A stretch of DNA of 64,000 nucleotides from Malacoraja senta (lineage: Eukaryota). A model generated the notes under the pieces. The model saw only the letters and a program-made list of their open reading frames with translations. It searched no databases and had not been told where the DNA came from. Below are positions 4,740 to 56,185 of the stretch, piece by piece. The position numbers and the translations under genes are program-made. The stretch spans positions 1-64,000 of the forward strand of contig JAXLNO010004798.1 in the NCBI GenBank assembly GCA_038087875.1. The letters are read 5' to 3'. How positions within the stretch are numbered: the first letter of the stretch is position 1; each line of letters starts with the position of its first letter.

Positions 4740-4900
4740 GACAGTGCGCAGCAGTTCTCTACCCTGTCCTCCGCTGGTTTGATGAAAGATGAGAAGAGAG
4801 AGGGGCAGTCCGGATCACCACTCACATGGTAGCCTCTGATTGGTTGCCAGACGGTCTCGTATTGAACCAATCAGAATAATTCTCATTTGTTAAAGCGAGG
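4740..4900 (-). promoter_or_regulatory. Promoter module of variable exon 1
   Basis: TGCGCA 4745-4750; CCGGATCACCA 4810-4820 shared with the exon 2 promoter; ATTGG 4839 and CCAAT 4867; CGCTTTAA (minus strand) 4890-4897. Confidence 0.65.
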
Positions 4901-5249
4901 ACGCGGTATTTTCCTTTCGCATTTATTGCTGTACAACCACTAATTAATTTTGCAATTTTGCCTTTTATTCGCTTCTTTTTCAAAATCAGATCGAAGACAG
5001 TATTACAGCTGACGTTAAGTGTCTGTTTTACACAATTACCGGCAAGATTCATGTCTCATTAAATATGTAAACGTGGGGCAGTTCTGTAAACGCACGGAGA
5101 CCCTTACACCCGCTGAGTTTCTCCAGCATTTTTGTCGACACTTACAAGATATGAGCTTCATTACATCCATTTATTTCAGCGCAGATATTTGCTTGCAACA
5201 TACTGTTTTGATTTAACAATCTCATTCATTGGTGCATAGAATTTCAAAT

Positions 5250-5584
5250 NNNNNNNNNNNNNNNNNNNNNNNNNNNNNNNNNNNNNNNNNNNNNNNNNNN
5301 NNNNNNNNNNNNNNNNNNNNNNNNNNNNNNNNNNNNNNNNNNNNNNNNNNNNNNNNNNNNNNNNNNNNNNNNNNNNNNNNNNNNNNNNNNNNNNNNNNNN
5401 NNNNNNNNNNNNNNNNNNNNNNNNNNNNNNNNNNNNNNNNNNNNNNNNNNNNNNNNNNNNNNNNNNNNNNNNNNNNNNNNNNNNNNNNNNNNNNNNNNNN
5501 NNNNNNNNNNNNNNNNNNNNNNNNNNNNNNNNNNNNNNNNNNNNNNNNNNNNNNNNNNNNNNNNNNNNNNNNNNNNNNNNNNNN
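5250..5584. other. Assembly gap (N run)
   Basis: Run of n. Confidence 1.
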
Positions 5585-5877
5585 TGTATCTTGATTCTTC
5601 CCTGTAATTATCAGGCACCTGAACCCATCCTATCACTAACTAGAGAGTGGTCCTGATCCTCCATCTACCTCATTGGAGACCCTCGGACTCTGTAATCGGG
5701 CTTTACTGGACTCTATTTTGCATTAAACGTCATTCCCTTTATCCTGCAACTGTACACTGTGGACGGCTCGATTGTAATCATGGAATGTCTTTCTGCTGAC
5801 TGGATAGCGCGCAGCCAAAAAAAAAACACGTTTCACTGTGCCTCGGTACACGTGACAATAAACTAAACTAAACTAAA
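5585..5877 (+). mobile_element. LINE 3' end (Rex1/L2-like) with GACAATAAA and (CTAAA)n tail
   Basis: Ends tttcactgtgcctcggtacacgtgacaataaactaaactaaactaaa; the same tail type recurs at ~53165-53212 and ~51135-51230. Confidence 0.55.
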
Positions 5878-8800: not shown

Positions 8801-9119
8801 GCAGGCTAAGCATGTCCTACCCTCCAAGAGGGAAAAATAGTTCAAAGAGGAATGCAGTCTGTTCTAGTTTACTGGTTATTTGACTGATTCAATCCTCTCA
8901 CCAAGGTTTTCTTACAAGTCCTGGGACTGCACTTTTTCGATTACTATCTCGAAAAAAAGATAAAATCAGGACCAAAGAGTATGGAGTTAAAAGGTTCAGG
9001 TGTTCAATATTCACTCATACTAGTCCTTAAATAGGTTAGCATGGAATATTTGCTGCAAACTTAAGGAGCTCTCTGCGACTCTGAATTGAAGTTGAAGTGT
9101 TTTGTTCAGAGCTACTTAC

Positions 9120-11567
9120 CTCATTGTGCTGGCAGATTAAATTATTCGCAATTTCTTTGATCTCGCGAGTGATACTAACCTTGCGTCCAGATGCGTTGTC
9201 TATTTTAGGAAACATGGCATGCCTCTTCGCAGTGCCGGAACTCGAACACGTGTCATATCGAAAACTTTGAGAAAGCGGATCACCCCCAAACACTTCCACG
9301 TAATTTGGAACAATTTCAAGATTTCTGCTGGCTTTTTGTATTCCATTCAACGAACTGCGTGTTTCAAAGCAACGGCAAGTGCCCAGATAACAATCGTGGG
9401 TCTCAAATCGACTCCTCCCTTTATAAACCTTAACGGCGAGCAAAATCACAATGACGAGAAATGTAGACGAGGTCACTCCTAAGCATATGACTAAGTAAAT
9501 GCTGAGATCCGCAAACGTTGTGGGTTCTTGAGCCGAACCGTTCGCATCAGTAAGTGTTTCCATATCATTGTCTGCCAATGATAAGATAATAGTCAATGAA
9601 GCGGAAAGTGGCGGTGAACCGTGATCTTTTACACCGACGACCAACCTTTCTCTTGTGCTGTCTTTGCTCATTATACCACGGATTGTCCAGATCTCGCCAG
9701 TATCTGGTGAAATGGTAAAAAGTCCACGATTAGTGGCCTGGATAAGTTGATAGGAAAGCCGGGCATTCTGGCCATAGTCCGCATCCTTCGCCGACACCTT
9801 GGCAACCAGATAGCCTGGTTCTGCCGAACGAGACATTGTCTCTGTTACTATTGATCCATAATCGGGTAATGGGTGTACAATTACCGGAGCGTTGTCATTC
9901 TGATCAAGGATAATAAATTCCACCGTAACATTGCTGGATAATGGCGGCTGTCCCGAGTCCGTCACCACAACCCATATCTGAATTTGTTTGAGACTCTCGT
10001 AGTCGAAAGATCTTTGCGAAAATATAATTCCTTTTTTTGATTGGATATGTACATAATTGAACACTGACTCGGTCTGAACCTGGCTCGGTACGATGGAGTA
10101 GTTTAATTCAGAGTTCTGATCTAAATCTGGATCAAAAGCTGTTACTGAAAAGATGGACGCCCCGATAACATTGTTCTCCATCACACGTGCTGTATATAAA
10201 GGCTGAGAAAAGTACGGCGAATTATCATTTATATCAGAAACTTCCACCACAATAATTTTCTTCGAGGTGAGCCCAGGTGACCCCGAATCACCGCAGATGA
10301 TTGTGATTTCATACCTCGAAATATTTTCACGATCAAGATGGTGTTGCGTGTGCAGTGTTAAATATTTTTTAGAGGATGCATCCAGATGGAAAGGAATGTC
10401 ATTTGCGACTTGACAATTCAACTTTCCATTGTCTCCAGAATCTTTATCTGTGGCACTGATTAAAGCCACAACCGTGCCTGGCTCCGAATCTTCGGGAACG
10501 GGGGTGAACAGTGTAGATACAGTGATCTCTGGCGCATTATCATTCATATCGATAACGTGAACGAGCACATGACAATAAGATGAAATCGCGGCGGGACCGG
10601 AGTCATCAGCCTGAATATTTAATTCAAACATACCGCTTTCTTCATGGTCCAAATTTCCATTGATCGTTATTTCACCTGTTTTGTAATCTACATTAAAAAG
10701 CTCACGTAATCTATCGGAGGTTTGGCGACCGAAAGAGTAAATAATCTCTCCATTTGATCCATCATCTAAATCAGTGGCATTTAATTTGATAACCAGTGAT
10801 CCTATGGGCATATTTTCCATCACGTTAACCCTGTAAACGGACTGGGAGAACTGGGGAGAGTTATCATTTACATCTTTCACAATTATTAATATTTCTGCGG
10901 TTCCTGAACGCGCGGGGACTCCGCCGTCCTTAGCAATCAGCAGTAGCATGTGTCTGGATATTGTTTCTCTATCCAGTGCTCTTTTTAAAACTAACACGGG
11001 CATGACTTCATTTCCATCTCGAGTCTCAACGTCCAATGAGAAGTAATCATTCTCAACTAACTGATATGATTGCACCGAGTTACTTCCTACGTCTGGGTCA
11101 TGAGCGCACTCAAGCGGATTACTTGTTCCTGGTGCGGCCATTTCTGAGATGTCAAGGCGCATCGAGCTTTCGGAAAAGGTCGGTTCATTGTCATTTATAT
11201 CCAGAATTTCCACTTCAGCTTCGTGCAGACTGAAAGGGTTTTCGATCATTGTTTCTAAGGAAAAGATACAGACTGCGCTCGGTCCACAGATCTGTTCCCT
11301 GTCTATCTTCTCCTTCACAAATAGATTGCCATTGTTCTCATTTACGTCGAAAAATTGTTTCGTCGGACCAGGCACAATACGGAAACTGCGAATCTTGAGC
11401 TCTTTCACGTCTAAACCCAAATCAACCGCGATATGTCCAACAAAGGCACCCACCTGCAGCTCTTCTGGAATTAAGTAACGAATCTGTCCAGAAATTAGAT
11501 CCCAGAAAGAGAACACCCAACACAGTAATATCCATGTTAACAGCCAGTGATGTCTATAACGTTTCAT
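9120..11567 (-). CDS. Clustered protocadherin variable exon 2
   Basis: Intact ORF (first ATG 11567; the track's 11576 start is GTG), QIRYLIPEE, C-X5-C (CGPSAVC), six EC repeats and a TM; perfect donor GAG|GTAAGT at 9120/9119; unspliced ORF continues to 9036. Confidence 0.95.
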
Positions 11568-11839
11568 TTCTAGCACAACACATCCCAGTTGTCTCGGCGT
11601 GACGGTTTCCTTTGTTACTTACGATTGTAGTCACTTACATTTGTTTCCCTCGACAATGTGTGAGAACAGATCAAACTAACTATCCTTTAGATCTCTGAGG
11701 ATTTCGTCTCGGTTTTTCTCAACATTTTTGCAACATTGTCCAGATTTCCGACTGCCAAATGGACGTCAGTGCTGCACGGCTCGAGATGCAGCATTCGACT
11801 GTGGCAAAATCTACGCAATGGTGTATGGGGAGGAAAGCG

Positions 11840-11950
11840 GGCGGGCCGGATCACCAGTCACAATCCAGCCTCTGATAGGCCGATGCCAAGTAATAATATT
11901 CAATCTATCCGGCATCTTCGTATTTATTAAAGCGGTGCTGTCTTGTGTAA
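11840..11950 (-). promoter_or_regulatory. Promoter module of variable exon 2
   Basis: CCGGATCACCAgTCACA..AGCCTCTGAT.GG 11846-11879 and TTAAAGCG 11927-11934, with the same spacing as the exon 1 promoter. Confidence 0.65.
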
Positions 11951-13479
11951 TCGTCACATCACATTTCACATTATTGGTTGTTCAATGAAAAATACAAACG
12001 ATGCTTTGACTATTTTGTGGGTTACATTCTTCCACGAATATAAACTCCCACTTTTATAATGTGTATGTAACAACGGACCATGTTATGCACAAGTTGTAAA
12101 CCCATGTTGTGCTGAAATGTAAAGAGTTTTAAATTCAATTGAAGCAGATATGTTTTCTAACACCCATTAGAACGGTTATCTATATTTCATAAATAATCAA
12201 AATTGAAACATCTAGAAATTGGATATCACCTCATGTTAATGCACTTGACACACGACGTGCTACTTACAACGCAATTAAATTCCCCACGAATAATTGTGAA
12301 ATTATGTAAAATATATACTGGAGATATGGCTATGGTGGTCTACGCTCCAGGTTGTGAACCAGAACGGGTAACGAGCAGCTGCATTATAGGCTATTAGTTC
12401 CCGGCACCGTTGCCTGCTAATTACTATCAGACATATAAGATATTCGCTTCATAGAGTACAGAGCTGATATCAAGAAGCGACGGGAAAATGAAGACTGGTT
12501 CGTGTACAAATTAATGCCCAGACGAATGGTGTTCCCCAATGAAGTTCTTCAATGATGTAGTATATGCAGTGCCACGCAAACGACGAAGTGTTAGAAGATC
12601 TTTGTAGGCACATCCACTCTGATTACTTTAATATCCACGATGCTGAACATTGTAAATGTAGGTAGCGCATGTAAAATGCAAAGTGATTTCGGATATACGA
12701 TATGTCAACGTGCCCTGCCTAAATCCCGTTGGATGTGATTGCATAATAGTGACCATAATCCGGCTAAGGTAATATTTAAGCATGGTTTACTATGTTCACT
12801 AAAATATGTGATGGATCCTTGTCTAACAATAACATTGCCCCATATCATTAGCGCGGTTGTACAGCAAAGCGTAAATATCTGGAGGAAATCAGCGAGTCCA
12901 ATAGCATTTGTGGAGGGAGAAATTGTCTCGTGGGGTCCGTGCATCAGGTAAAAAGGTCAATAATTCCTCCCACGTCTTAAATGCTGCTCAGCCGCCTAAA
13001 TTCCCCCCATCAATTTTTAATCCAGTTTCCACCACCTTCAGTCCATTGCGTCTATTATTGGTACAGTTTCTTTAGTATTTGGATGTACCTTTTAAATTTG
13101 TAAATATGAAATATACTTCCCAGATGATAGAGCTTCGAGTCACGTATAATTCATTCCATGGTGGATACCGAGAGAGTTGACGGGTTAAAGACAGATAACG
13201 ATACATTTTTGTTAGTTAAGTGATGACATATCCCATACAGACTGGACGTCAGTTCAAAGCTTATGGACGCTGCCATCAAGAAAAGCATTGTTTGGTCATT
13301 GACAATATTGCTTTGAGTTGCTTTCTTGAATTGTTCCAATCATCTGATGAAGTTACACCCCCAAATTATTGGAGTGTGCGATTTTCCCTAGTTAGCAATA
13401 TCATCCGAACGACGACTTATTTCGAGCGATATTGTTGCTCTTGATTTTGTACGTCCTAACGATTGCAGATTTGGTAGTT

Positions 13480-14789: not shown

Positions 14790-17700
14790 ACCCTTGCAGT
14801 GATGAAGATGTACCCATTCGTTTCGCCTACCTTCACTGCTGTTGGAGTTGTTAGGACAACCTGGTAAGGTCCTTCCCAACAAACCGCCAACCCTTTCCTT
14901 ACCCAATTCTTCACTGGTACATAGTCAACAGGCTTCACCTTGATAGAAGAGACCAACAGAGGCAATTCACCATTTGCTGCTCGCACCTCGAATGCAAATC
15001 TCTTAGTGCCCGAGTCAAGGCCAGAATGTAATCGGTCATCTCCGTGGTCATATGATGGAAAATTATAACTTTCATTGCATTTTGGTTCCAAGGGGTTTTC
15101 AAAGGTCTACCATAAATAATTTCAGCTGGGCTCAGTCTAGATTTCCCTGCAGGCGTGACACGCATTTGAAATAAAGCTATGGGGAGTAATTTGATCCACC
15201 CAATTCCTGTCTCCGCCTTCAATTTAGCTAAATTAGTTTTCAGGGTCTGATTTGGCCTTTCTACAAGTCCAGCAGCCTGTGGTCAATAAGCACAGTGTAA
15301 TTGCTGTTGGATACCCAGCTGCTCGCAGAATTCTTTATTAATTTGCCCAATAAAATGAGGACTATTGTCAGAACTATGCCGAATTGGGATACCGAATCTA
15401 GGGATAATTTCTCTCATTAGCACCATGATGACAGTAGCCGCTTTGTTTTCAAGTGTTGGATAGGCCTCGATCCATCTGCTGAATACATTGACAATTACGA
15501 GTACATATCTGTATCCCTGGCATTTCTCTAGCTCAATATAATCCATCTGTAGAGTATCAAAAGGACCCATGGGCAAAGGTGACTTCCCATCTCCACAAAT
15601 TACTCCTTTTCCTGGATTGTACTTCTGACAAATAATGCAGCAGCTACTCACTGTCTGGGCCAAAGTTTGTATTCTTGAATGCCACCAAGTAGCTAAGAGA
15701 GCATTTCCAATTGCTCTTGCACCGCCGTGAGTTGCAAAATGCATACACTCCACAACCCAAACTGCAAGAGGATCTGTCATACAAATCTGCCCTGCCGGTG
15801 TAGTCCACAACTCCGTCATGCAATCTATTGTACATCCAAGCTGTTTCCACAATTTTACATCCCATTCAGAAGCTTCCTCCTGGAACTGAACAATTTCCTG
15901 GATGGTTGGCATTGGCTTTTCCGAGGGAGACTTGTTACCTAAACTTTTAGTCTGCCTCATCATTTTTGGCACCACCACCTTGCGTTCCCGGGATACTTCC
16001 TTTGCTGCCTGGTCAGCACGACGATTATCTATGTCTGTCGGGGTCTGTCCTTTTGTGTGTGCGCTACACTTCATCACTGACATTTGTCTAGGCAGCATCA
16101 GGGCCTTTAATAGATAAGTCACCAATTTCTTATGAGATATGTGTGTTCCTGCCGAGGTTAGGAATCCTATATTCCTCCATAGTTGTCCAAAGTCTTATAC
16201 TACTCCGAATGCATATCTAGAATCTGTATATATGTTCATGCTTAAATGTTTCCCAATAATGCGAGCCCTAATTAAAGCAAATAATTCAGCCTGTTATGCG
16301 GAATAGGGTGACTCAAAAGCAGCTGGTTTTACACTCCTGGTCCACAATCGCGTACCCAGAAAATTTCTCTCCCCGGGGCCCAATGGATGCACCCCCGTCT
16401 ACGTACATTGTTATGTCAGGGTCCTCGATAGGAACGTCTTTTAAATCCTCCCTTACGGATGTTTCTTCTTCAATTATGAACAAACAGTCATGTCCTACCT
16501 CTGACCGTTCCTCTGGATGTGAAATAAGGAAAGATGCCGGATTAATTGTGGTACAGAGTTTAAATTGGAGTTTTGGATTGTTCAATAAGTAAATTTCATA
16601 TTTAGTTTGACGAGCCATTGTCAAATGCTGAGTTTGAATTTGGCCTAACAAGGCTGCCACTGAATGGGAACTGTATACTACTGTCTCCTGTTGTAAGGTC
16701 AGGTTTGCAGCAGACTGTAAACTATTATAAATTGCTGTCAGGATCTGGGTGCATAATGGGTGTCCCCTTGCTACTGGGTCGAGTTTGGATGAATAGTATG
16801 CTACTGGTCTGTGCTTATCCCCATGTTTTTGGGTGAGGACTGCAGTTGAGCACTCAGAAAGAATGGTGCAGTAGAGTTGGAAGGGTCTATCATGGAGTGG
16901 TCTTCCTAGTGCTGGGGCGTGCATTAAGGATCTCTTCAGACTTTCAAAAGTTTCCTGAGCTTCTTTGGACAACTGGAATTCGCCCTCTAGGCTAGTATAA
17001 GGAGTCAATTCTTTGGTGTCTAGTGCAATATTAGGGATCCACGGTCTGCAGTAGTTCACCATACCGAGCCACTGTCTCATTTGCTTTGCCTCTTTAGGAA
17101 TAGGAAATTCGCAGATTGGTTTGAGTCTACTCTTTTCTAAACTTCTTTCTGTAGCCGAAATTATCACTCCTAAAAACTTCACTTTTTGTTGAGACATCAA
17201 TACCTTGGGCTGAGAGACCACATATCCTAAATTTTCCAGATGATTCAATAATTGAGCAGTGTCCTCACGATTACTTTGCTCATCCATACTAGCTACCAAC
17301 AAATCATCCACGTACTGTAATAGTGGATTTTCTTTTAAAATTCAAAGTGCTTAACTGTTCTTCATGACATCGAGAAAACAAGGTAGGCGAATTAATGAAT
17401 GCCTGAGGTAGTCTTGTCCACGTATATTGTTGTCCCCTATAAGTAAAGGCAAATAAATACTGGCTGTTCTTGTGCAGAGGTCACGAGAAGAAGGCATGTT
17501 GTCGGTCTACAATTGAAAAGATTCTTGCTTCTGCTGGGATTAAAGCTAGGATATGAGCCGGGTTTGGCACTAGAGCATGGAGCAGTTCCACCACTACATT
17601 AACTGATCTTAAATCTTGGACCAACCTGTACTGGCCCTCTTTTTCTGGTTTTGGCACTGCAAGGATTGGTGTGTTGCAAATAGACTGGCACTTCACTAAG

Positions 17701-18480: not shown

Positions 18481-18484
18481 CTAA

Positions 18485-20618: not shown

Positions 20619-22473
20619 TGTTACCAACAATATCTCAAACGATTCACACTCCATTCGCAACTTCCCAAGACTTAACAAGTTCGCTCCCAAACAATGGCCA
20701 AAAGATCTTCACTGCGCAAACAAGTCTCTCACACAATCAATCTCTCCTTTCAAAACAATCGGTCTCTCGTTTCAACCCGGGTACCCCAAAATTCTTTCAT
20801 GAAATCTCACGCACAAAAATTAACACAAGCTTTCAAAGCTGTAAACAATTTCAAATCTGTAAACAATCTTAAATCGGCAAACGATCTCAGGTGCTTTAAT
20901 CTAAGGTGCAACGGAACGATCAAACACACTTCAGCAGCAAATCTCCTACACTCAAAACACTTCAATCTAAACAAAAACAGATGAGCTCGTAACATTCAAG
21001 CAAAATCATATTTAAACAAGAAATTATACTACTAATAACTATCATGCAAAACACACTGCAATATAAAACACAAGCATTCGACTAATAAAGCATTCGCTAA
21101 CTGTACAGTTCTGAAATATATCGCAATATTTTAAATTACCCAAATCATGCTGGTGTCAATCATGGGTACAGGAGACCTTCCCTTCAAAGTACTTTTTCAC
21201 TTGGCGGTACTACTCCCTTCAAGGTACTTTATCCACTAACAGGTACATATTCCTCTCCTAAGTTATACTTGACGGTACTATTCCCTTCAAGGCACTTCTT
21301 CCACTAACAGGTACTTATTCCTCTTCCGAGTTACTTTTCCACTAACAGGTTACTCGTCCCTGGAACCGAAGGATATGCGCCCTTGATCGCACAGCCACGA
21401 TTCGGACTCCAATTACAACAGTAGTCTTAATCACACTATATTAACATACAGTCACGATTCAAACCACGATTACAACAGTAGTATCTAACACACAAACACT
21501 CTAAATTAACGGCAATACACAATAAATCAATGGCAATATTAAACGGACTTTACACTATAAATCAACGGCAATATTAACCATATATTATTTTTTACAACAA
21601 GTTATAAGCAATCTAATATATACAATTTTATTAATGTACAGTAACCAGTTCCCCCAATATGAAAGTCCTGAATAGATCAATAAAGGATCTCTATAAAATA
21701 ACCAGTCCTTCAATATGAAGCCCTGAATTTGGTAAAATTTTGATTGAAAAATTTTAACTTTTAAACCACCGTAACTATCGTTCCCACTATTCCCACTATT
21801 TCCACTATTCCGAATAATAGACGCGTCTCCCAATTCATTTCTCAGTATTGCTTTAAATATTTTCAGCCAATTATACTCCAACACTGAGTTCCCAGTACTG
21901 TTCCGAAGTTCTCAAACTTGTCCGAAGTTCTTAAACAACACACATAGGCTTCATCACGTCTCTGCTTCGCGCTAGCTTCCTATGCTGATTTTTGAAGTGT
22001 CTTTTCCAATCACACTCTCATCACTGGTACAGTACTTACTCCTCTTAGTGCTTTCCCTATTCAGCCATGTCTATTAAGATACCCCGTACTCCAATTCTCG
22101 TATCCAAGTCTGAGCAGAGCCTCAAACCCCTCAAATATAGTTGTCGGGCCAACCCAATGGTACCCAGCTGCAAAAGCTGTTGATTAACTAAGGTGTGGGG
22201 CCTTTAACCCACAAGAGAAACGCCTTGTGAGCCTAACTCCCACCGTCTTCCCTTAGGCAAGGACTCGAACTCTCACCCTCAGTGCTTGCCAGACTACTAT
22301 TATTTCCGATCTCGTCGGGAATCCAAACACAAGCACGTGAATGATCGATTCTTCCCGATCAGTGAAGCGGGGAAAACCGATGCGAAAACCGCACCGTGGC
22401 GTTGATTTCTCCTCTCGCAATCTGAAATGACTCAACTCCCTGACCACAAATTTATGTTTGGCATTCACTTCAG

Positions 22474-30110: not shown

Positions 30111-31636
30111 TAATATGGTAATTTAACGGCTCAGCATATGCCCTTTTCTTCTGGCAGGTGCAGCGTGTAAACACTTTACAGGAATAGCCACAATGTACAT
30201 CGTTTGCATCGACTTCTCACGAGCTCTTGCGCCAATGTTTATGATTTGCCCTTTAACAAGAAATACCGGAAGAGGCAACCTCGACGACGGGCATAATTCT
30301 GCAAGAGGAATCAAAGGTGAGTTTTCTTGTGCCACATATCGGCGATTGGATCGTTTAATCCGTTGGGCCACATACTAACCATGCCTTCAGTGCACGATGT
30401 AAAATCTCTCCAAGTCTCAAGGCATCTTTTTACCCTAACAATGTAACCATTCATTTGCTCCCCTGTCTTTAAAGTACATGTTCCAAATCTTCCGCTCAAT
30501 ACAATCTCGGTGAACTACGGTTTGAAGTAGATTTCGAACGTTTTAATAACCTCTAACTTTTACCTTTCTGCAGTGCCCTTAAATCAGTAAATGTGCCATA
30601 TACATTAAACTGATTTCTGCAAGATAGCTTTCTTACATTTCCTCTAAGTAAGGTCAATACATCGTGTTTTCAGCATTGATTCCCATCTCAAGAATTTTAC
30701 GCTTTCATATTTGTAAAAGTATTTCAACCATACATAGATAATTTAAATTATCAGCAACATTTAGATATGTCGCCAAAAACGTACGAGAGCATGCGCTGTT
30801 GAAGACTAGAGGACAGTCCTTCAGCGGAAACGGCACTCTTCCTTTAGTCACTCAAAACAGTCTGCTCAGCCTTGCGCAAAAGCGTGGCAGCGAGACCCAC
30901 AGACCATTAATAAAAATATCTTTGCAAAACGAAATTGCAATGTCGCCATGCCGAGAGAGGCAACAGCAAAGCAATAGGCGGCTCAATATATTCTGAGATA
31001 GACTTTGGACTGTAACATAACGATTAAACCGGAAATTCAATCATTATCCCTAGGATAATTTGGGTTACCAAAAATGCATGTGCCTTTCGGAATAATGCAC
31101 TCAGTGGTGCAATTACATTCTATAATTTCATAATGTTTAGATTGTCTATAGATAATTAGAAATCTACGATTAAAGCATTTGAAGGCTCGATACTTAATCC
31201 AGTCCACTAATACGATCCACGATTCAACCAACAATTTGAATCTTTGTATAGTATGAATGCCAATCAGTAACCGGAGGCCTTGTGTGACCTCCGTATTATC
31301 TCTCCCTTCCTTATATTAAGCACTGTGGCCTATCATATGGTATTTGACCGTATCGAGTATTTGTTTAGACTTCTTGCCTTACGCCTGTATCTCAACATAA
31401 TCGGAACTTTATTTTCACTGACTGTCTCCTTATCATTATGGCCAATTCTACAATAGCCGTAGTTCAATTGTGCGCCCAACTATTTAACTGGTCAATCTAA
31501 CAATCAAACAAAACAGATGGCTGTATTCTGTTGATAACCACGACCACGGAAATCATGACAAATGGTTGAGGTTGGACAAGCGAAACCCTCTTATTACGTG
31601 ACTCCTATAAGAAAACACGGGAAGTGGTTTGTGCCC

Positions 31637-31958: not shown

Positions 31959-34900
31959 ATGCCTGAAAATGGTGGAGGCATATTCCATCGTAGACCTCAA
32001 ACGGTTGCTGGAATCGATCTGAAAGGAAAATACTTTATAAGACATTTGATGGAGAAGAAACGTCGCCCATTCCTTCTCTCCAGAGATGCTGCCTCACCCG
32101 CTGAGTTACTCCAGCATTTTGTGTCTACGTTCGATTTAAACCAGCATCTGCAGTTCTTTCTTACACATGCTATTAAATATACACAGAAGGATGACCTTTC
32201 CCCGAACTATAAATACTCGTTAATACAATGGTCCCGAGAGATAACAATCAACATTAAAGCAAAGACCCAGGTCCAGGATCTGACATTTGTGAAAGCTTGT
32301 TGAAATTCAAAAATATGTTCGGAAGGCCTTCCGCCTAAATACGCAGATATACCATTAATTTAGAATTTGGAATTTAGGTTTTAGATGATGAAGAATTATA
32401 CAATCATATTTCACGGAAGCAAAACTCAGGGCCAATTTATAAGAATCTAGCACACTTTTATCCCTTCCTCTGGCCTAACACCTAAATCCTCCTCTTCTCC
32501 CCTATCTGACATGCTTTCGGCTCCTTTTCATCTCTCGCCTTTGCCACTTATTCCACTCATCTGCCCGCATCCTCACATGTATGCACCTATAACTAGCGAG
32601 GCTTTGCTGAGCCCCCACCTCTCGTTTGCAGATTTCTCGACCATTCTCCCTACCACGACGATGTGAGTAAGGGCCCCGAGCAGATGCTGCTTGACCTGCT
32701 GATTTCATCTCGCATCTCTGCCTTGCTGAAGACTCATGTTCCTTTCACTCCATTCATTCCATTGTTTCCCCCGACATTCCCATACAATTATCACACTATA
32801 TCCGCTCCAGAATCTACACCTCATCCAAACATCAAGGATATTTTTAAGGAGACTATTGGATGTGAAAAGGATGTGCAATCTCTGTATCCACAGCTCAGGA
32901 GGTCAGGTTTGAAGATAGGAGCTGCGAGACCGAAATCTGACCAGCAACCATGTTCCGCCGCCCTAATGTTTGGAGAATCGCACAGCTCGCATCGAGAAGC
33001 GGTAGGACACGGGATTCTAACTGCAACGGACCTGATGCCAGTTACGATTGCTTCAGATTACTTTAGGGAGATAATTAGTGCAAATAATGGGGACTTTTAA
33101 CAGTAAATCCACTAAATGTTGCCGTAAAGCAGGTGGAAATTCGCTGTTGGTGATTATCTTTACCAGCCATTTATGCAGTTCGTGTTTATCTTTTATGTGT
33201 TATTTATCTGTTAATCAAATGCGATGATTTGCTTTTACCAAGAGTTATTAGTTAAACGTCATACGTGGACATGAAGGCAACCTGCCCGAAACTAAAATTA
33301 ACATCTTAAAGGAGAAGATTGAGTGGCGAATTGCATAGAGATCAAATGAGCAAGACTATTAACCAATAGTGAGTACCCAGCCATAAACCTTCCGACAAAC
33401 AGGTGATCAAATAGTTATCTTAGCATCCAGCAGATATGTATTAAAACGACTAAGTTCATTATTGGCACCAGACACGTTTTACTCCTATCACTGATTTCTG
33501 TTTGAAATTGGGACCACGAATACTCTGAATAATTCGTCATGTCATTTTAAAATAGCGAATTTTACATTTTGTATTAGCGAATCATTATAATTCGCTAATA
33601 CTTTAATATTTGCATCTGATATTTTCTCATCAATTTTATTATATTATCCTACTTCATATTACGCTGTGATAATTAGGTAACCCATTACACGATGTGTTGC
33701 AAGGAACTGCAGACACTAGTTTACACTGAAGATAGACACAAAATACCGGAGTAACTCAGCTGGAAAGGCAGCGTCTCTGGATAGAAGGAATGGGTGGCGT
33801 TTCGGGTTGAGATCCTTCTTCTATGATGTTGTTTCTTCGTCCTTTACATCACAATAAACCTAGGTCAACGATGACAAATTGCTAAAAGACAAGAATTAAA
33901 GTTAATTCAAACTGGTTATCGTGCAAGGCACCACTCTGGAACATGTCAACTGTATGCCTATTTGGAATGTAGAAATGTGCGTAGTTTATCACTCAGAAGA
34001 CAATTGCGTTTACACTTAGTTCCTTGCGAAATATTTAGCCATATACCAAATTAACAGTTTTTACCGCACAACATCGCAGCTTTATTTAACGAAAAGAATG
34101 AGATCATAGGCTGAGAGTGCTGTTGTGACCCTGGCCTATCATGTTCACGGCATAATGACCGGCCAATCGTGTCAACTATGAAACGAAACTCATCAGATTC
34201 TACATATCAAAATACAGCAGAATTTGAATTACCAGTCATTTTGTTATTTAAAGTTAATTCGATTACGGACTCTTGAAATATTAGTTAGTCACATTTATTC
34301 TCGTCTAGTCGTGCGGAATTGAAGTTAACGTTTATTTGATATCATTGGCCTGCACTTGTTTGATTCGTTCTCATGAGAACACGATAAAGCAGGATTCGAC
34401 CAGTTATTTTTATTTAGGTTAATTAATTTTGGGAACAACAAGACATTCTTCAGAACACTAAGAGCGGTACTTTTCGCTACAAAGGACTCCTAAACATTTT
34501 CGTGATATTGAGAAATATAACATAGCACGTGAAGATTTACGGACACAACAACAAATTGGAAATGCTAAATAAGTAAGCGAGAATCGAATTTCAATGCAGA
34601 AGCAGGTCAATGCCATCAACTGAAGTCTCTAACACGGTAAAAAATAATCATTTCTGCAGTCCTTCTTGTCTTCGCTTGCAATTTTAATCGCATTCTAAAA
34701 TGATGTCTGTTGTGATATTCTGTTTCTTTGAGCAGAATTTGACCCAATCGTTCAATGGTGCCTCGTCCTGTCATTGTCTTAATTAAGCTTTATTCAACCA
34801 ATTCACTTCTTGATTGTTGCGAAGTGAACGAGAAAGTGAAGACTCCACCCGGAATATAGCTTTCATTTCTCTAAATGCAAATTCGTTCTTTGATCATTGG

Positions 34901-35647
34901 AATTGTATTGGCTATCGATGGACCAGCAACAATTTCTCTCGAAGTCCTTCCAATGTCCGAAAAGAAACATTACAACAGAATACGGTCGTGAAGAGTATTT
35001 GCTGATGGCAAGTCTACCTTTTTAAACACCTAATCCCAGAATAGGTTCTGTTTTGGAGACGTATGTTGCGATAAATGCCCATGAGACGATGTGTGGTCAG
35101 CAGAATGCTGCCGCAAATCGACTTGGCTCATTACGAAGACTTGCAGTTACAACCGTATTAGACATGAAGCGTAATCATGCACAATGAGATGGCCACTTGA
35201 GGAAATATAACGGAGAACAGGCAACATCTATGCAAACTGCTCGCCGCAATTAAGAGACAAAATCATTTCCATGTATTCGTGCATCCTATAAGGCGTGGGA
35301 ATGTATTTCCATAAACCTTCTGTGATCCGGTTCCACTTCATTTTCAGCCAAATTATACTGTCCAGAAGGGTACATTTCCATGGAAGATTGCTCCAAATCC
35401 CACTGACGGTTACCGCAGATCTGAAATCGAAAGAGAAACCAGGTTTCAGAAATATATATTGTTAAGCTCTCTTATTTCGATAACAATGTGTATTACTGCA
35501 GAAACCTCAGAACCATTTACGTCATGGTGATACAGTGATTACGTTCGCATTACGTTCCCAGACCTCTCAACTAACAAATCCCACCTTGGCAACAATGTAA
35601 TTTAATTCAATTCATAATGTGATCTCAAAAAAATAACGTTAGCAATT

Positions 35648-44850: not shown

Positions 44851-45984
44851 CTGCCTGCTGCGCCAATGTGCCGACCCTGTTGTCCTCATATTCACAGTCC
44901 TACCAATATTAAAACAGATGTGATGGGAAAGAAGGCCAAATGACCGGGTTTTAACTCGAATAAAGGCAGCACATGTTATTGTTTAACAATGTTAATTAAT
45001 CTCTGTTTATATCCCTATCGTACCGTACAGTCCCATATCGTACCATACAAAGACTATCTCCGAAACAAATATGCTTCCACTGTTAGATTCGGCTTGTCAC
45101 TGAATATTCAAAGAAACCTCGACAGATATACCATAGAAAGTATCGCTCCAAATAAGCGATACTTATTAATTGCTGGCATTTCTACTTCTAATTTGGAGAT
45201 ATTTTCTATACGGAAGGCTCTTTTTCATCTCATTCCCTTCATTGTTACTAACTTGAATTCATTGTCCTGCAAAATAACTTATATTGAAACGATGGCATCA
45301 GCTATAGTTTCAATATAAATGTACGCGAGTCATTGCGCCAATGTATACTAACTTTGTTTAACTGGTTACTTCAGATTGACCAATTTAGTTAGCCTTTAAC
45401 GTTAATGCTAATTTTAGTTCAGTTGAGTAGTAATCTTTTTTAAATAGATCAATCATGCGATTTACAGGAGATACCACAATGGGCGCACTACTACCCCCTG
45501 CCCCCCACCACTCCCCAATCTACCTTGCGTTATTCCCTCAATTGCTCGGAGCTTTCAAGATGATAGTAACTAATGTAAGAACTGGAACCTTCTCCAAATT
45601 TCATTGAAGACTCGACATTTTATTGGCCTGAAATAAGAAGAATGTTCTTCTTCGAATTCGTTTGAATTTACTGGTTACAGGGCAGTAGACTCTTAAACAA
45701 TGTGACGATTCAAGAGCAACTGGATAGATATTTTAGGGAAATCGCTGGATTTGGTGGTGAGAGCAGGAAAGTGACATTGACTTAAAAATATAGTTATAAT
45801 AGCAAATGGTTAAACAGTTACCAGAGGCTGCTTAGCCTAACACTGCTTCGATTTCTTATGGAGATTTGCCAGGCCTAAAAAAACATTATTATAAGGTTTC
45901 GCAAACAAGCAAACAATTCTCACTCTGTTTATTTCTTAACATAACCTATTTCTATCCAAGAGGTTTTAAGAATGCACGCCTCAC

Positions 45985-48444
45985 CTCGTAAAATCCTGTT
46001 GTATCCATGTTCAAAGTGTATGATGTCTTTTCATGTTCTGCAGACACATTCGCTCTATTCTTGATATTATTCGTGAGTGCGGCCGATTCATGCAGCTTTG
46101 GAAGCTTAAGATGACTCACGGCTTCATTTGGTGTCACCTCATCAATGAAATCTTGTGGGTAATTTTCATTATCACGAGCCTCCCTGTAACTGGGCGGCAT
46201 TTGAAGATTCGCGCTGGCCTTTTGAACTCCATGGGGCGAATTCCTCCTCCGCGGGAAATATGACGTGTCTCCAACGCAACAATGACTGCCAGAGTAATTT
46301 CCACTTCTATGTACCTTAATGCCGAGGATTACAATTGCCACAAATAAAATAAATGATGTTGTGCCAAACAAAATCATTAGATATAGTTTTACGTCAGTTT
46401 TCCATGGCCCAGTTGTCCCAAACAAGCCTTCATTGGATGAATTTTCTGCTAAATCGTCCTGTACTGATACATTAATCGTGACGGTGGACGAAAGGGACGG
46501 AGTTCCTTTATCCTTCACGACAATCACGATTTTCTGCTTGAGCGAATCTTTGTGTCGAAAGCGGCGAATTGTCCAAATCTCGCCAGTTTTTGGAGCTACA
46601 GTAAACAGGCTTTCATCCGTAGGGCGACGAAGCTCATAAGAAAGCTGTGCGTTCCGTCCAGAATCGGCATCAGTGGCCGTGACTTTTGAAACCAAGTAAC
46701 CTGAGTCTGCAGATCTTGGTATAGAATCATCAACTGCAGATAAAGGCGATATGATCACTGGAGCATTGTCATTCTGATCTATGATGACCACTTTCACGGT
46801 GGCGTTGCTGCTGAGCGGCGGGATCCCTGCATCCTTTACTTGCACATGGAATGTAAAGGTTTTTCTTTGTTCATAGTCAAACGACCTACGAGAGAACAGC
46901 GCCCCACTGGTCGGGTTTATTGAGACGAAAGTGGATGACGGCAACCCGTTTATCAGGCTATCCAAAATGGAGTACGACAATTGAGCATTCTGATTAGAAT
47001 CTGGATCAATTGCTGGCACAGAACCAATTGAAGAACCAATAACATTATTTTCTGTTACGTGCACCGTAAAAGAAGCCTGCGTAAATTGTGGGGCGTTGTC
47101 ATTTATATCCGCAATTTGAACTCGGATTAATTTCTTGGTCGAAAGTGGAGGCGAGCCACTATCTGTGCATGTAATTGTAACATTATACTCCGGCACCTTT
47201 TCACGATCTATGTTACCACGGGTAATTAACGTGAAGTAATTATCAAAAGAACCATTCAGATTGAAAGGGATATCTCCGGGGATGCTGCAAGAAACATAGG
47301 GTGAGTTTTCGTAATCTCGGTCCCTAACTCTTATAAGAGACACTGCCGTATTCGCAAAAATATTTTCTGGTATTGTGTTGAAGGTGGACGTTGTTATTAT
47401 TTCAGGCCAGTTATCATTAACATCGCTAATCCTTAATACAACTTTACAGTATACTGGTATTTGCTGAGTGCCTCTGTTTTCAGCTTGTACCAAAATCTGA
47501 TAGTTATTTGCTTCTTCGAAATCCACAGCACCAATTACCCTGATCTCCCCGCTTGCTGGGTCCAAACTAAACAATTCGCGTACTCTATCAGGAGTGTGAT
47601 CGCTGAAGGAATATATTACCTCGCCGTTTAGGCCTTCGTCCAAATCCTCGGCTATTACCTGCACTATCAAGGAATCTTTAGGCACATTTTCTGGTGTTGT
47701 GATTTGATAAATGCTTTGCTTGCAGACCGGAGCATTATCGTTCACATCAAGCACTGTAATAATGATTTGGGAGATTCCGATTTTTTTCGGGTTCCCGCCA
47801 TCAGTGGCCGTCAAGGTTAATCTATGTGTTGTTTGCTGCTCGCGATCAAGTGGTCGTTCCAGTACCAATTCTGGGATATCACTTTGTTCACCATTTGATT
47901 GCAGTTTTAAACTGAAATGCGCGCTTGGATTTAGCTGATAGGAATGAACACCATTTATTCCAGCGTCTGCGTCCATCGCACTCGGGAGTGGAATAATCGT
48001 CCCGACCGGCGCTACCTCAGATATTGCTTTGTTAATTTCCTCTCTCTGGAATAGGGGCGCGTTGTCGTTTATGTCGAGTATCTCAACTTCAATGCGATAT
48101 ATCTCAAGCGGGCCCTCGATTATGGCCTCTAACATCAACAAGCAACTGAAACGTTGTCCACAAAGCTCTTCTCTGTCTATTTTTTCTTTGATAAATATTG
48201 CTCCCGTCCTCAGGTTCACGGCTAGGTGCTGTATTTGCTTTTCTGATGCAACTCTAAATCTGCGCTGCGAAAGCTGCTTAATCTCCAACCCGAGATCCCG
48301 GGCAACATCACCAACAAAGGCACCAACCTCCAGCTCTTCCGGAATTGAGTAACGAATATTACGTTGTAGTGTATCAGAAAGGTGGAAGAGTAGCACATGG
48401 AAAACGGAAAGTTGCAACACTCGGTTGTTTAGCTGTGCGACCAT
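45985..48444 (-). CDS. Clustered protocadherin variable exon 3
   Basis: 830-aa ORF, NIRYSIPEE, C-X5-C (CGQRFSC), six EC repeats, TM LYLMILFGTTSFILFVAIVILGI; donor GAG|GTGAGG at 45985/45984. Confidence 0.95.
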
Positions 48445-48674
48445 TCTGAATTAAATTAGCCCGGTCATAGCCGCCGAATTTAAGGATTTCTTCCACCACG
48501 TTGGAAAGAACGCCGACAATGTAAATGCTGATTACCTTGAATATGTCGCCGAAAAGCTGTATTTCTTTCCTAAGCATACGAGCGATTTTTCTTCTGCGTT
48601 AATATGAGGTACAGAAATCCTTTTAGCTGAAATATGAGTCCAGAGTGTGGAACAATGAAACCGTTCCCTCTCCT

Positions 48675-48815
48675 CGATACTGCGCAGTGCTTGTTCAAAG
48701 GAGACTGATGCAGGATCCTCGACTACATTTCCTCCCCTCATTGGTAGAGAGCGACACATAGGGACTTGACCAATTATAACAGCAAATGCTCTTAAAGCAA
48801 CAATGCCTCCACTAT
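48675..48815 (-). promoter_or_regulatory. Promoter module of variable exon 3
   Basis: TGCGCA 48681, ATTGG 48740, CCAAT 48770, CTTAAAGCAACA 48791; aligns with 56050-56185. Confidence 0.65.
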
Positions 48816-50409
48816 GCTTCGGAAGATCTGCTTTGTGTATTTATCGGTGTGCAACTTTAGATTTTGCAGCCTTATATTTATAAAATTATGTTATGTACTC
48901 TTTGAGATGCAGCGTAATGAAAATTATACTTCCCATTATTGTAAATCATGTATTTGACGGATATTACTTACCTATTTTTGAAGATAGATTGCATTCAATA
49001 ACTGAAAGCGTTTGCTCCAAGTGCCTTTGAATATTATTTACATGCTTGTGCAACTAATTTATTATTCATCTACTAAACATACATTTAAAGTAATCTTCCA
49101 TTAACATACAAAGTCTCTCATCATATGAAATGTGGCTGCCTTGTAACAATATTCCTAGTAATACAGAGAATATTGCTAGTAATACACAATATGGAGCAGC
49201 TGAATGTCCCTATATTTTGAACGTTATTGTGTTCAATATGCAAGAAAATTTATCAAACTATAAAAGTAAACGTGCAGGATAGCCCGTTCTGCTCGCTCAA
49301 GCATAAACATTGGATTCAACGCAGACTGCAGTGGAGGTGATCGAGATCTTCATATTCCGATGTGTAAATGTTACTGATAGTGTTTTCCTTATACGACTAC
49401 AGTACATAAACGACATGAATTAATCCAGTGTCTCTTCGTCCCCAGAAGGCAAAGGACGTTCGTCATTTCTTCATTGATTCTGGCCAATTTCCACAGTTGC
49501 TCTAGAGAAAGCATCCCATCCGGATGCATCACAGCTTGAGGTGGCAACAGCTATGCCCACGGCCTCACGAAATTGCAGAGTTGTTAACCACATAATCCAT
49601 CTTTTCCCCACCGTCGACGCTATCTATGCCTCACGCTGCCTCAGTAAAGCAGCGATATACCAAAATACCAGTGGAATTCGATCATTCTCTCTTATCTGTT
49701 CTCCGGTCGGACAGATGAGACAATAGCTGGAAAGAATGAACCACCACATTCAGACTCTTGACCGGAATCTTGATGGGCTACGGATGATTTTTTGATGTCT
49801 TAGTCTACTTCGTTATAGCTCATGCCCTTTTCATCTGCACTTTCTCTGTAGCTATAATGCCAAATCCTGACTTTAAAAAAAAAACTATTTTACTGCCATG
49901 CGCTACATTGTTGCACTTATTATTTTGGTATAATTTGCCTGTATTGCACAGGAACGATGCTTTATACTGTATCTCAGTGCACGTGGAACGAATCATATGG
50001 AACTCTACTGTTCAAATCCCTATTGCATAAAAGTATAAACCAATCTGTAACGTTTCTAGCAATTATTCACTTGGTACACCTTTGGTCACACGCTTCCACT
50101 GCAAAATACAACACTCCATCTTCACGCTCTGCCTCCTAATATAAAGCCAGGTTTTTGATCCAATTGCATTGGATCCCATGGGCCCGAACATTTTGGACCA
50201 ACATCCTTCGTGGGATCTCATGTCCAAAAGCACTATATCAACCATGCTGCCATCGTCAATGCATTTTCTTCCAAACATAACCATATTGAAAGTCTATGAA
50301 TAGTTCCTGACTTTGCAAGTGTAGAGTAATCCTTTGCCTCAGTTCTTTCTTTACAATAGACTTTCTTGTCACTGAACTTAGTCTAATGGAGTGTAAATAC
50401 TGCCGTAGT

Positions 50410-52910: not shown

Positions 52911-53157
52911 GTGGTGTGCTCGGCGCAACACTGAGCAGTTAACGGTAAAGCATATCTTATTGCACATCGAACATAATTGGTGAAATGCATCTTTGCTTTG
53001 AATGCAATTAGTGACATTGATTAATTCAGGGACAGTGTCTGAATTAATCAATGTCACTAATTGCATTCAAAGGAAAGATGCATTTCACTAATCATGTTCG
53101 ATGTACAATATGATATGCTTGACCGTTAACTGCTCATTGTTGCGCCGAGCACACCAC
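52911..53157. repeat. 247-bp near-perfect palindrome (119-bp arms, 9-nt spacer)
   Basis: 52911-53029 is the reverse complement of 53039-53157 with about 7 mismatches. Confidence 0.95.
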
Positions 53158-53403
53158 TTAAATAAAACTTTTCATTGTACCTCTGTACACGTGATAATAA
53201 TAAACTAAACTCAACAGTGGCCTTTTTTCATATTTGATGCGCGAACTTTTCTTTTAAAATGCATAGGGAACATTTGTTCAAACGTTCATTCCGCAATCGA
53301 CGGCTAAAGTCTGATTACTTAAATTTACGTCCAGAAGCTTTGTTACTACAGTACATGGATATTTCAAAAGTCAGTTGCAGTATGTGGACGTTGCAGCATT
53401 CAC

Positions 53404-55855
53404 CTCGTGAAATTCAGTGATATTCCTGCCCGTGAAGATTGATGTCTTTCCATGTTCAGTTGTGACATATGAGGCAGTCTTGGTATTAGTCAGGGGTTCG
53501 GGCATACCTTGTAATTTTACCACATGAAATCGTTTATTGTTGATTCTTTGCCAATATCACCTGGCAATACTTGTGGAAGAATCTTATTGTCGTACATCTT
53601 GGTGTAATTGGGCGGTAATTGAATATTTACACTAGCCTTTTGAACTCCAATTGCTGTATCTCCTCGAAAGAAAATCCGTGTTCCAACAGCAACAGTATCC
53701 TTCTTGATCTGTGCACCTTAATACCGAGAACTGCAATAGCCAAAAGAAGTAGCAAGGACGTTGCGCCAACGGTAACAGTTAAATAGACTTTTAAGTCATA
53801 TTCCATATGCCAGAGGTCCCCCATCATGCAAATATTAGATGCATTTTCTACACTGTCATCCTGCACTAATACGTTGATGGTAACTGTGAATGAGAGTGAT
53901 GGCGTGACCTTGTCCTTTACCATAATTACGATTTTTTGAGAGAAAATATCTTTATGCAGAAGACGGCGAATTGTCCAAATTTCCCCCGTTTCCGCAGCCA
54001 ACGTAAACAGACTTCCATCAGAGGGATGATGTATGTGATAGGATAGTTGTGCATTTAAACCAGAATCTGCATCTGTTGCGGTAACTTCTGCCACCAAGTA
54101 ACCCGAGTGTGCTGATCTTGGGATTGTTTCTTCTACTATGGCAGCTTTAGTTGGCAGAGGTGAGACTATTACCGAGGCATTATCATTCTGGTCTACGATA
54201 ATGATATTCACTGTCACATTACTACTGAGTGGTGGCGATCCAGCATTCCTAACTTGCACTTGGAACTAAAATGATTTAATTTCTTCAAAATCAAAGGATC
54301 GTCGTGCAAACACCACCCCATTTACTGGGTTTATCGAGACGAGTGAGGCACAAACAAACCATGCACAAGCACATCTAAAACCGAGTCGGATAACTGGGCA
54401 TTTTCATCAGCATCTGGATCAAAGGCTGGAACAGTAGTAATAGAATCGCCAATTATATTATTTTCTTTCACATATAAGGCGAATGACGGTTGCGTAAAAC
54501 GTGGCTCGTTGTCATTTGTATCCGAGACGTGAACGCTGATGGTTTTCTTTGTCAAGAGCGGCGGGGAGCCCCGATCTGTACAAATAATAGTAATGTTGTA
54601 CTCAGGCGTCTTCTCCCGATCTATATCGCCGTCAATGACTAAAGTGTAGTAATCGTTAGATGAGTTATTCAACTTAAAGGGTAACTCAGTTGCGATCCAA
54701 CAATAAACCTCTGCTTCCTTTCGAGAATCCCGGTCGGGAACTTTGAAAAATGCTACCGCAGTGCCTGATGAAGTGTGTTCTGTGCTAATGCTCGGAGTTG
54801 AGGTTATTGTTATTTGGGGACTGTTATCATTAGCATCGGTACTCTCTAACAAAATGTTACAGTATTCTGATACTAACAATGTGTACCCTTGTCTCTCGCC
54901 TGAACTAAAATGTGATAATTTTCTGCTTCTTCGATGTCCACGACACCGATTACCCTGATTTCCCCGCTTGTTGAATCCAAACTAAATAAATCGCGCACCT
55001 TATCAGGAGTGTGATCGCTAAACGAGTAGGTTACCGCTCCGTTTAGGCCTTCATCCAAATCATTGGCTGTTAATTTCGCAATCACGGTATCTTTTCCCAC
55101 GTTCTCTGGTGCTGTGACTTCATAGATGTTCTGTTCGCCGACCGGAGCATTGTCGTTCACATCGAGCACAGTGATTATAATCTGGGCAGTTCCCATGATT
55201 CTCCGGCTCCCTCTGTCAAATGCTATCAGTGTTAGGCGGTGAGTTGTTTGCTGTTCTCGGTTTAAAGGTTGTTCCGGTATCAATTCTGGGGTGTCCGTTT
55301 TTTGGTCTTCTGACTGCAATTTCAAAGTGAATTGTTCGCTCGGGCTCAGCTTGTAGGATTGAATGCTGTTGCTTCCAGTGTCCCCGTCCTGCGCGCTGGG
55401 AAGTGGGAATGTTGCTCTGACTGGCGTCAATTCTGACATTGCAATACTAACTTCCCTCCTCTGGAACACGGGTGAATTGTCATTGATATCAAGAATTGTA
55501 ATTTCTAAACGATAGAGCTTCAGCGGATTCTCGATTACACCCTCCAGTTTAAGCACACATGAAATGCTTTGTTCGCACAGCTCTTCCCTGTCTATCTTTT
55601 CTTTTACATACAATTTTCCGTCGTTTAAATTTACACCGATATATTGTTTTTGAAACTCAGATGATATCCGAAACTGACGCGCCAATAACTTTCACATTTA
55701 TGTCTGCATCCGTTGCAATATTTCCAATAAAAGCGCCGTTCCATTTCTTCAGGAATTGCATAGCGAGTAGTCTTGCAAACTGAAACAGTCAAATACACGA
55801 ATACCCAGAAAATAACCTGGCATTGCGACAATAAAGTACTTCTCGTGGAGGCCAT
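53404..55855 (-). pseudogene. Clustered protocadherin variable pseudo-exon 4
   Basis: Pcdh sequence split over ORFs 55631-55855, 54873-55685, 54331-54879 and 53627-54259 by several frameshifts; in-frame TAG at 54268-54266 (KSF*FQVQV); donor GAG|GTGAAT retained at 53404. Confidence 0.9.
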
Positions 55856-56049
55856 TCCGGTGGAAAAAGCTACAAATACAGCTGTTCTTTACATTCAAGC
55901 ATATCTGTACATTACCGTGTTGGTCGAGATAAAACGCTGCACCTTCTGTGCGAGCGCCAGGTTTTTTTTGCACAAATAAACAGACGTTTCACAGCTTTTG
56001 GTAAAAAGCTAACAAAGAGCTGGAGCTGCTAAGTGTTCCTCCATTTTGC

Positions 56050-56185
56050 GACACTGCGCAATGCCGGTGTTGGGGGAGTGCTGCCAGATCTCCAGCCGCA
56101 TATCTTCACCTCATTGGTAGACAGCGTCACAAAGGGACCAGCCAATAATAGCATCACACAATCTTAAAACAACAGCGCCCCTACA
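56050..56185 (-). promoter_or_regulatory. Promoter module of pseudo-exon 4 with a CGCT-box/CTCF-like site
   Basis: TGCGCA 56055, ATTGG 56113, CCAAT 56142; minus-strand TAGGGGCGCTGTTGTTTTAAG at 56163-56183. Confidence 0.65.

Follow-up and report, generated by a model that had tools for sequence, protein, structure and literature searches.

Clustered protocadherin genes carry a conserved element before each variable exon, and in mammals the stochastic choice among their promoters is explained by CTCF at the conserved sequence element (CSE) of each promoter. What stands in this place in a cartilaginous fish is the question raised by a stretch of 64,000 nucleotides from the skate Malacoraja senta (contig JAXLNO010004798.1 of assembly GCA_038087875.1, positions 1 to 64,000; hereafter the window), which contains four protocadherin variable exons, all on the minus strand and all with Cadherin_2 and Cadherin domains. 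Their start codons lie at 4555 (exon 1), 11567 (exon 2), 48444 (exon 3) and about 55855 (exon 4, which is broken). Each of them is preceded by one copy of a conserved cassette organised around two opposed CCAAT boxes, and its conservation, spacing, orientation and one-per-exon distribution were observed directly. We think it probable that this cassette is the core-plus-proximal promoter of each variable exon, kept since before the split of rays and sharks, likely TATA-less and with twin NF-Y sites.

The sites named in the original prediction were found to be exact on the plus strand, namely ATTGG at 4839, 48740 and 56113 with ATAGG at 11875, TTAAA at 4890, 11927, 48792 and 56164, and TGCGCA at 4745, 48681 and 56055; the opposed CCAAT claimed for exons 1, 3 and 4 is present at 4867, 48770 and 56142. 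As the genes run on the minus strand, gene orientation gives the order GCTTTAA, ATTGG, CCAAT. On this strand the distance from GCTTTAA (counted at its TTTAA) to ATTGG is 22-23 nt and that from ATTGG to CCAAT 28-30 nt, CCAAT is followed by an invariant GATC at 27 nt in all four window promoters, and CCAAT lies 262-312 nt from the ATG. Two composite patterns, TTTAA-N14-22-ATTGG-N22-26-CCAAT and ATTGG-N20-26-CCAAT-N20-24-GATC, each gave 3 matches in the window, all on the gene strand and upstream of exons, when shuffled sequences gave expectations of 0.02 and 0.03, respectively, so a chance origin of the layout is excluded. The bare two-box pattern is near chance in the window (4 matches vs 1.5 expected). 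An extra ATTGG...CCAAT pair was seen at 58445-58475, beside the sequence gap at 58511-58655, with no profile match and no exon after it.

Three other elasmobranch loci were compared, those of the sawfish Pristis pectinata, the bamboo shark Chiloscyllium punctatum and the cow shark Heptranchias perlo, whose nine intact promoters and the four of the window made up a set of 13 promoters that includes no holocephalan and no second skate genome. All nine carry the cassette at a similar distance from the ATG, and all 13 promoters align over it (approximately 200 bp). An nhmmer profile built without the window sequences gave exactly four matches in the 64-kb window with both strands searched (E 1e-22 to 1e-29), each just upstream of one variable exon. 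The fixed-spacing promoter grammar proposed for every variable exon was thus recovered independently of the window, and the test that the original prediction had set for itself, enrichment across other paralogs, came out in its favour, with the cassette in all 13 intact promoters and in four elasmobranch orders. Over the elasmobranch loci the cassette profile found one copy per variable exon (13 intact and 3 decayed) and no match elsewhere. The four upstream regions of the window align with each other only over about 90-200 bp, and the flanks outside are without alignment.

Read from its 5' end, the consensus of the 13 promoters consists of a TTGyrCA..AATAAAT block, about 35 variable bases, GCTTTAAGAA, about 13 bases and tCTGATTGG, followed by a spacer of about 20 bases, aCCAAT(C/G)AG, ATGTGAcTGGnGATCC, a C/T-rich stretch and an invariant CA with yrCGyA after it. 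The inverted CCAAT box of the consensus is CTGATTGG and the direct box is CCAAT-C/G-AG. The two boxes of exon 1 form a perfect inverted repeat of 11 nt (4835-4845 and 4865-4875), and exon 2 has both pentamers altered (ATAGA, CCTAT) in an otherwise intact cassette.

The age of the cassette follows from the exons behind it. In a tree of the first 330 residues, skate exon 1 paired with Heptranchias exon c, exon 2 with a and exon 3 with d (support at least 100/98). Since exons 1-3 have one-to-one orthologues in the cow shark, the paralogues predate the split of rays and sharks, and since the paralogues are that old, the cassette has been held by selection and not by recent copying. Orthologous promoters are more similar (0.63-0.74) than non-orthologous ones (0.55-0.61), and this excess is a mild gene-specific signal, reminiscent of the mammalian element called SSE (PMC3333863). 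The one-to-one Heptranchias orthologues also indicate little gene conversion among skate exons 1, 2 and 3.

The position of the cassette relative to transcription could be read from a full-length cDNA of exon 3 in a closely related skate. The database protein nearest to exon 3 is encoded by a contig of 3,777 nt that was assembled from public run SRR13269327. This contig is 97% identical to the window and matches 48688-45985 and then 35422-34391; at the junction the donor GT follows 45985 and the acceptor AG precedes 35420. Its 3' end has AATAAA and then 22 A, and it opens with 22 bases from the 3' end of the Smart-seq template-switch oligo (sequence from bioRxiv 10.1101/2021.03.24.436752), including an ATGGG by which this oligo can be told from the oligo-dT primer. 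The oligo at the 5' end, the splice and the poly(A) together mean that the contig represents a spliced cDNA with a poly(A) tail, and that template switching captured its 5' end. This one mapped 5' end places the start of exon 3 at 48688, which is the A of CACTGCGCAG and lies 244 nt before the ATG. A strand-invasion artefact is unlikely and was rejected, as the oligo's 3' end agrees with the genome at only one of the six bases that precede 48688.

Relative to this start, the proximal CCAAT of exon 3 is at -56, the distal ATTGG at -86, TTTAA at -108, the GCTTTAAGAA of the consensus likewise at about -108, the upstream block TTGyrCA..AATAAAT at about -150, GATC at -29 to -26, and TGCGCA spans +3 to +8. 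No TATA box is found in the exon-3 promoter, where GATC stands at -29 instead. TTAAA was dismissed as a TATA box or TATA-like element near the start, since its position is some 108 nt before the mapped start and upstream of both CCAAT boxes. The start column of the alignment has CA in 13/13 promoters and a CpG at +5 in 12/13, and it gives the predicted starts of exons 1, 2 and 4 (Table 1). The TGCGCA copies said to lie nearer the ATG are where they were reported, but the exon-1 copy (4745) was rejected as a counterpart of those of exons 3 and 4, since it falls at about +34, in another alignment column.

NF-Y is the primary CCAAT binder, and the typical position of a CCAAT box is -60/-100, in most cases in a promoter without TATA (PMC7692634). 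Exon 3, with its boxes at -56 and -86, roughly shares this position. CCAAT position and a TATA-less promoter are together the published signature of NF-Y, and for this reason the cassette was read as a twin-NF-Y promoter. Both the proximal and the distal box are intact in 11 of the 13 promoters, and the proximal flanks are CCAATCAG or CCAATGAG. The preferred context of NF-Y is CCAAT-C/G-A/G-G, which we take to be that of the cassette flanks CCAATCAG and CTGATTGG. The opposed CCAAT pair with flanks presumably of NF-Y type therefore stands from the paired NF-Y sites of the earlier claim, and binding itself is what we infer from the sequence. In the mechanism that we propose, two NF-Y trimers would bind the opposed CCAAT boxes and set up a TATA-less, initiator-driven promoter at the invariant CA, the block ending in GATC at -29 would occupy the usual TATA position, and the remaining conserved blocks would bind further factors; the cassette may also have a role in promoter choice. 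The start-site block may resemble ZNF143 or bZIP sites, and the upstream block may be similar to those of C/EBP or Cdx. The fugu consensus of the neuron-restrictive silencer element (PMC2926608) was absent from the window even when 2 mismatches were allowed, and the searchable literature yielded nothing relevant on CCAAT or NF-Y in clustered-protocadherin promoters.

Several observations weigh against this reading. Exon 2 has an intact open reading frame and a well-kept cassette, yet both of its CCAAT pentamers are mutated, so either NF-Y may be dispensable there or this promoter may be failing. CCAAC is found in one Pristis promoter and a damaged distal box in one Chiloscyllium promoter, and the proximal box, at -56, lies at the near limit of the positions usual for NF-Y. 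As several equally conserved blocks have no assigned factor, the main determinant may be something other than NF-Y. A single assembled contig supplies the start, and NF-Y occupancy of the cassette is a prediction. The Heptranchias orthologue of exon 2 (ATG at 7814 of its locus) retains both CCAAT boxes intact, and skate exon 2 (11872-11908, minus strand) can be seen as a natural double CCAAT-box mutant.

A CTCF-like box had also been predicted in every promoter. The CTCF matrix was that of JASPAR (consensus TGGCCACCAGGGGGCGCTA), with the camel Pcdh-beta locus as a control, and both the matrix consensus and the control behaved as expected. Forward CTCF sites of 9.2-13.2 bits lie about 255-350 nt upstream of 3/4 camel start codons, and all four camel promoters share GGTGGCGCTGCAGG.TAA, the classical CSE, which scores 6.6-13.2 bits when anchored on CGCT. 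For the 13 elasmobranch promoters the best CTCF scores in the 500 bp upstream were -4.4 to 7.7 bits, none at a conserved position, and random 500-bp pieces of the window had a median of 3.4 bits and a 90th percentile of 7.5. The CGCT of the exon-3/4 type, scored by anchoring in skate and shark, reached -1.2 to -3.6 bits against the camel values, and the claim of a CTCF-like box in every promoter was not supported. Judged by matrix score, the cassette has no CTCF-type motif. CTCF-like matches across the window were not enriched over shuffles. The top matches of the matrix in the window (40685, minus strand, 13.7 bits; 43759, plus strand, 12.2 bits; 50411, plus strand, 11.9 bits) are intergenic or intronic.

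CGCT is strictly conserved only in the exon-3/4 type, as TGTGTCGCTGTC between the boxes of skate exons 3 and 4 and of both cow-shark relatives. The promoters of exons 1 and 2 belong to the nu-type, in which CGCT is absent or there by chance within CGCTTTAA, and its place differs between the two promoter subtypes. The predicted CGCT box is thus a conserved element between the boxes in exons 3 and 4 but is not conserved in exons 1 and 2. Of the properties of a CSE, a single copy before each exon, roughly constant in its distance from the ATG, was seen for 4/4 window exons, a strictly conserved CGCT core in the exon-3/4 type only, and a forward CTCF motif match in none of the 13 promoters. The bird Empidonax, tried as a further CTCF control, was discarded, as its locus is more than half N and gave no match above background and no CCAAT pair. 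In the camel locus, three exons have an identical 14.9-bit reverse CTCF match about 2.2 kb downstream of the ATG (11991, 17166 and 24658, minus strand), stronger than the matches at the promoter CSEs.

Two groups of promoters were distinguished in the locus of a teleost, the damselfish Stegastes partitus. In group A (ATG at 1108, 4118, 7219 and 10001) the CSE is of the CGCT type, cCGCTGTTGaCCAG, with a poor CTCF-matrix score. In all three promoters of group B (ATG at 22087, 25248 and 31502), ATTGG is followed by CCAAT at 26-28 nt, start to start, and 27 nt after CCAAT there is GATC in two of them and AATC in the third. These elements lie on the gene strand, about 210-300 nt before the ATG (spans 21850-21908 and 31205-31261 of the locus). 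The layout is therefore not an elasmobranch addition as had been supposed, because the opposed CCAAT pair occurs in three Stegastes promoters, with GATC at the same spacing in two. Group B differs from the elasmobranch cassette in that it has no full-profile match at E <=10 and its exons fall outside the elasmobranch clade in the tree; the full profile matched no bird, teleost or camel promoter. One group-A CSE is identical at 15/18 positions to the cow-shark element between the boxes, and a 25-nt elasmobranch matrix had its best match in the whole Stegastes locus at a group-A CSE; the other three group-A promoters were not among its top matches. This resemblance suggests, short of proof, that the CGCT element and the proximal box region may share ancestry.

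How far do other explanations account for the cassette? That it is the elasmobranch homologue of the mammalian CSE, where CTCF binding loops the chosen promoter to a distal enhancer, was the view of the original prediction, and we regard it as unlikely. The single element per exon at a fixed distance from the ATG is what a CSE would give (PMC7811963), TGTGTCGCTGTC is kept between the boxes in both skate and cow shark, and the inter-box element resembles the CGCT-type CSE of Stegastes as described above; PMC2926608 also cites a CGCT element of the elephant-shark cluster as already identified. The anchored CGCT scores far below the camel CSEs, though, the 13 promoters do not exceed background, nu-type promoters are without CGCT at that place, and CTCF-like matches in the window are no commoner than in shuffles.

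There is also only a slim chance, in our estimate, that the opposed pair is read by a factor other than NF-Y, such as a dimer at the inverted repeat, an NF1/CTF-type protein at TTGGC half-sites or a Y-box protein. Such a factor would suit the dyad symmetry of the pair, the TTGGC of some copies and the survival of the remaining cassette without CCAAT in exon 2, but the conserved core is the CCAAT pentamer with CAG flanks and not TTGGC-N5-GCCAA, the spacer between the boxes differs between subclusters, and NF-Y is reported as the primary CCAAT binder (PMC7692634). A functionless trace of recent tandem duplication or gene conversion is hardly credible. The exons are indeed tandem paralogues, but their coding sequences are only 46-54% identical (protein identity 54% for exons 1 and 2, 46% for exons 1 and 3), the flanks beyond the cassette cannot be aligned, and the same cassette occurs in four elasmobranch orders at orthologous exons. 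With paralogues so old and orthology one to one, recent duplication or conversion cannot explain the shared block, and it was refuted by the protein divergence, the profile built without the window and the ortholog tree.

The subtype-specific blocks, which had been proposed as an address motif, exist in two sequence versions, but they are not addresses of single exons, because they are common to all members of a subcluster and to other species. They are kept in the cow-shark orthologues and in all members examined, and they are the subcluster versions of the spacer and of the -30 block.

Table 1 Variable exons, constant exon and promoter elements in the window
Feature	Position	Strand	Remark
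Variable exon 1	2075..4555	-	intact 826-aa open reading frame, six cadherin repeats
Exon-1 promoter module (nu-type)	4743..4947	-	nhmmer E 1.5e-26, profile without window sequences
Exon-1 upstream block	4921-4936	-	
Exon-1 GCTTTAA	4890-4896	-	
Exon-1 distal inverted box	4867-4871	-	ATTGG on gene strand
Exon-1 proximal box	4836-4843	-	CCAATCAG
Exon-1 block ending in GATC	4813-4826	-	
Exon-1 predicted start	4783	-	by alignment column
Variable exon 2	9036..11567	-	intact open reading frame
Exon-2 promoter module (nu-type)	11763..12015	-	nhmmer E 1.5e-27
Exon-2 upstream block	11970-11985	-	
Exon-2 GCTTTAA	11927-11933	-	
Exon-2 distal box	11904-11908	-	degenerate, ATAGA
Exon-2 proximal box	11872-11879	-	degenerate, CCTATCAG
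Exon-2 GATC block	11849-11862	-	
Exon-2 predicted start	11819	-	by alignment column
Constant exon, exon-3/4 subcluster	34391..35420	-	about 43 codons, stop, 3' untranslated region, AATAAA, poly(A) site; joined to 45985 in cDNA
Variable exon 3 with 244-nt 5' untranslated region	45985..48688	-	GT donor after 45985
Exon-3 promoter module	48653..48884	-	nhmmer E 1.2e-29; cDNA 5' end
Exon-3 upstream block	48839-48854	-	
Exon-3 GCTTTAA	48792-48798	-	
Exon-3 distal box	48770-48774	-	ATTGG
Exon-3 CGCT	48750-48753	-	
Exon-3 proximal box	48737-48744	-	CCAATGAG
Exon-3 GATC block	48714-48727	-	
Exon-3 start	48688	-	A of CACTGCGCAG
Variable exon 4	53627..55855	-	pieces in at least 4 different frames when aligned
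Exon-4 promoter module (broken exon)	56013..56249	-	nhmmer E 5.5e-22
Exon-4 upstream block	56210-56225	-	
Exon-4 GTTTTAA	56164-56170	-	
Exon-4 distal box	56142-56146	-	ATTGG
Exon-4 CGCT	56123-56126	-	
Exon-4 proximal box	56110-56117	-	CCAATGAG
Exon-4 GATC block	56087-56100	-	
Exon-4 predicted start	56062	-	by alignment column

The constant exon sits between variable exons 3 and 2, so the window spans the boundary of two protocadherin subclusters. Since exon 3 is spliced to this constant exon in the cDNA, exons 3 and 4 are the last of one subcluster, whose constant region is short and consists of a single exon, and the next subcluster, of nu-type, starts with exons 1 and 2. Exon 1 has its nearest protein in the skate Rhinoraja (92%), and the nearest named elephant-shark relatives are Pcdh nu (Pcdh nu17, 62%). 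The open reading frame of exon 3 is intact from 45952 to 48444 (minus strand). Exon 4 is likely a pseudogene, or else the assembly carries indel errors; its cassette is still recognisable with the weakest score among the four window modules. Three runs of N are present in the window. The one at 5250-5584 starts 303 bp past the distal end (4947) of the exon-1 module and 695 bp from the ATG, and it is crossed by no motif and no coding sequence; two open reading frames listed across it were rejected as artefacts of reading through N. Between the subclusters there are retroelement reading frames at 15283-17311 (minus strand) and 26713-27459 (plus strand), with integrase, RNase H, a reverse-transcriptase fragment and a LINE-type endonuclease.

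Three things are new here: a start site has been mapped, the architecture is one of twin boxes, and a CTCF motif is lacking. If cartilaginous fishes do use twin-NF-Y-type promoters without a CTCF motif for the same gene architecture, then either their choice among promoters is made in another way or CTCF was added later to an older promoter. We would put forward only tentatively that the ancestral protocadherin promoter of jawed vertebrates was a twin-CCAAT (NF-Y) cassette with CGCT nested between the boxes, that the CTCF-bound CSE of tetrapods later arose from this CGCT segment, and that sharks and rays choose without promoter-bound CTCF; the exon-3/4 type and the teleost promoters would then be preserved intermediates toward the tetrapod CTCF-binding CSE. 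The cassette offers precise sites, which are the two boxes, the -30 block, the start and the nearly invariant CpG at +5, besides a CCGG at -25, and the one-to-one orthology of exons and promoters between sharks and rays makes shared and gene-specific promoter signals separable.

Compared with known NF-Y promoters with twin CCAAT boxes, the cassette is alike in its conserved pentamer, its flanks (presumably of NF-Y type), its boxes at -56 and -86 and the absence of TATA, but its boxes are opposed, forming an inverted repeat, and the conserved cassette around them is much longer. With the mammalian CSE and SSE it shares one element per variable exon, a fixed distance from the ATG and splicing to shared constant exons, and the mild gene-specific signal next to its common core recalls the SSE (PMC3333863). 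The camel CSEs, in contrast, have GGTGGCGCTGCAGG.TAA without a CCAAT pair, whereas the skate and shark cassette is without a CTCF match and its nu-type is without CGCT. Non-canonical precedents exist, since PMC4978886 describes alpha CSEs without CGCT in zebrafish and Xenopus and a 13-bp motif in Xenopus gamma2 15-36. Compared by that description only, these motifs are like the cassette in that whole subclusters rely on a conserved element that is not of the CGCT/CTCF kind.

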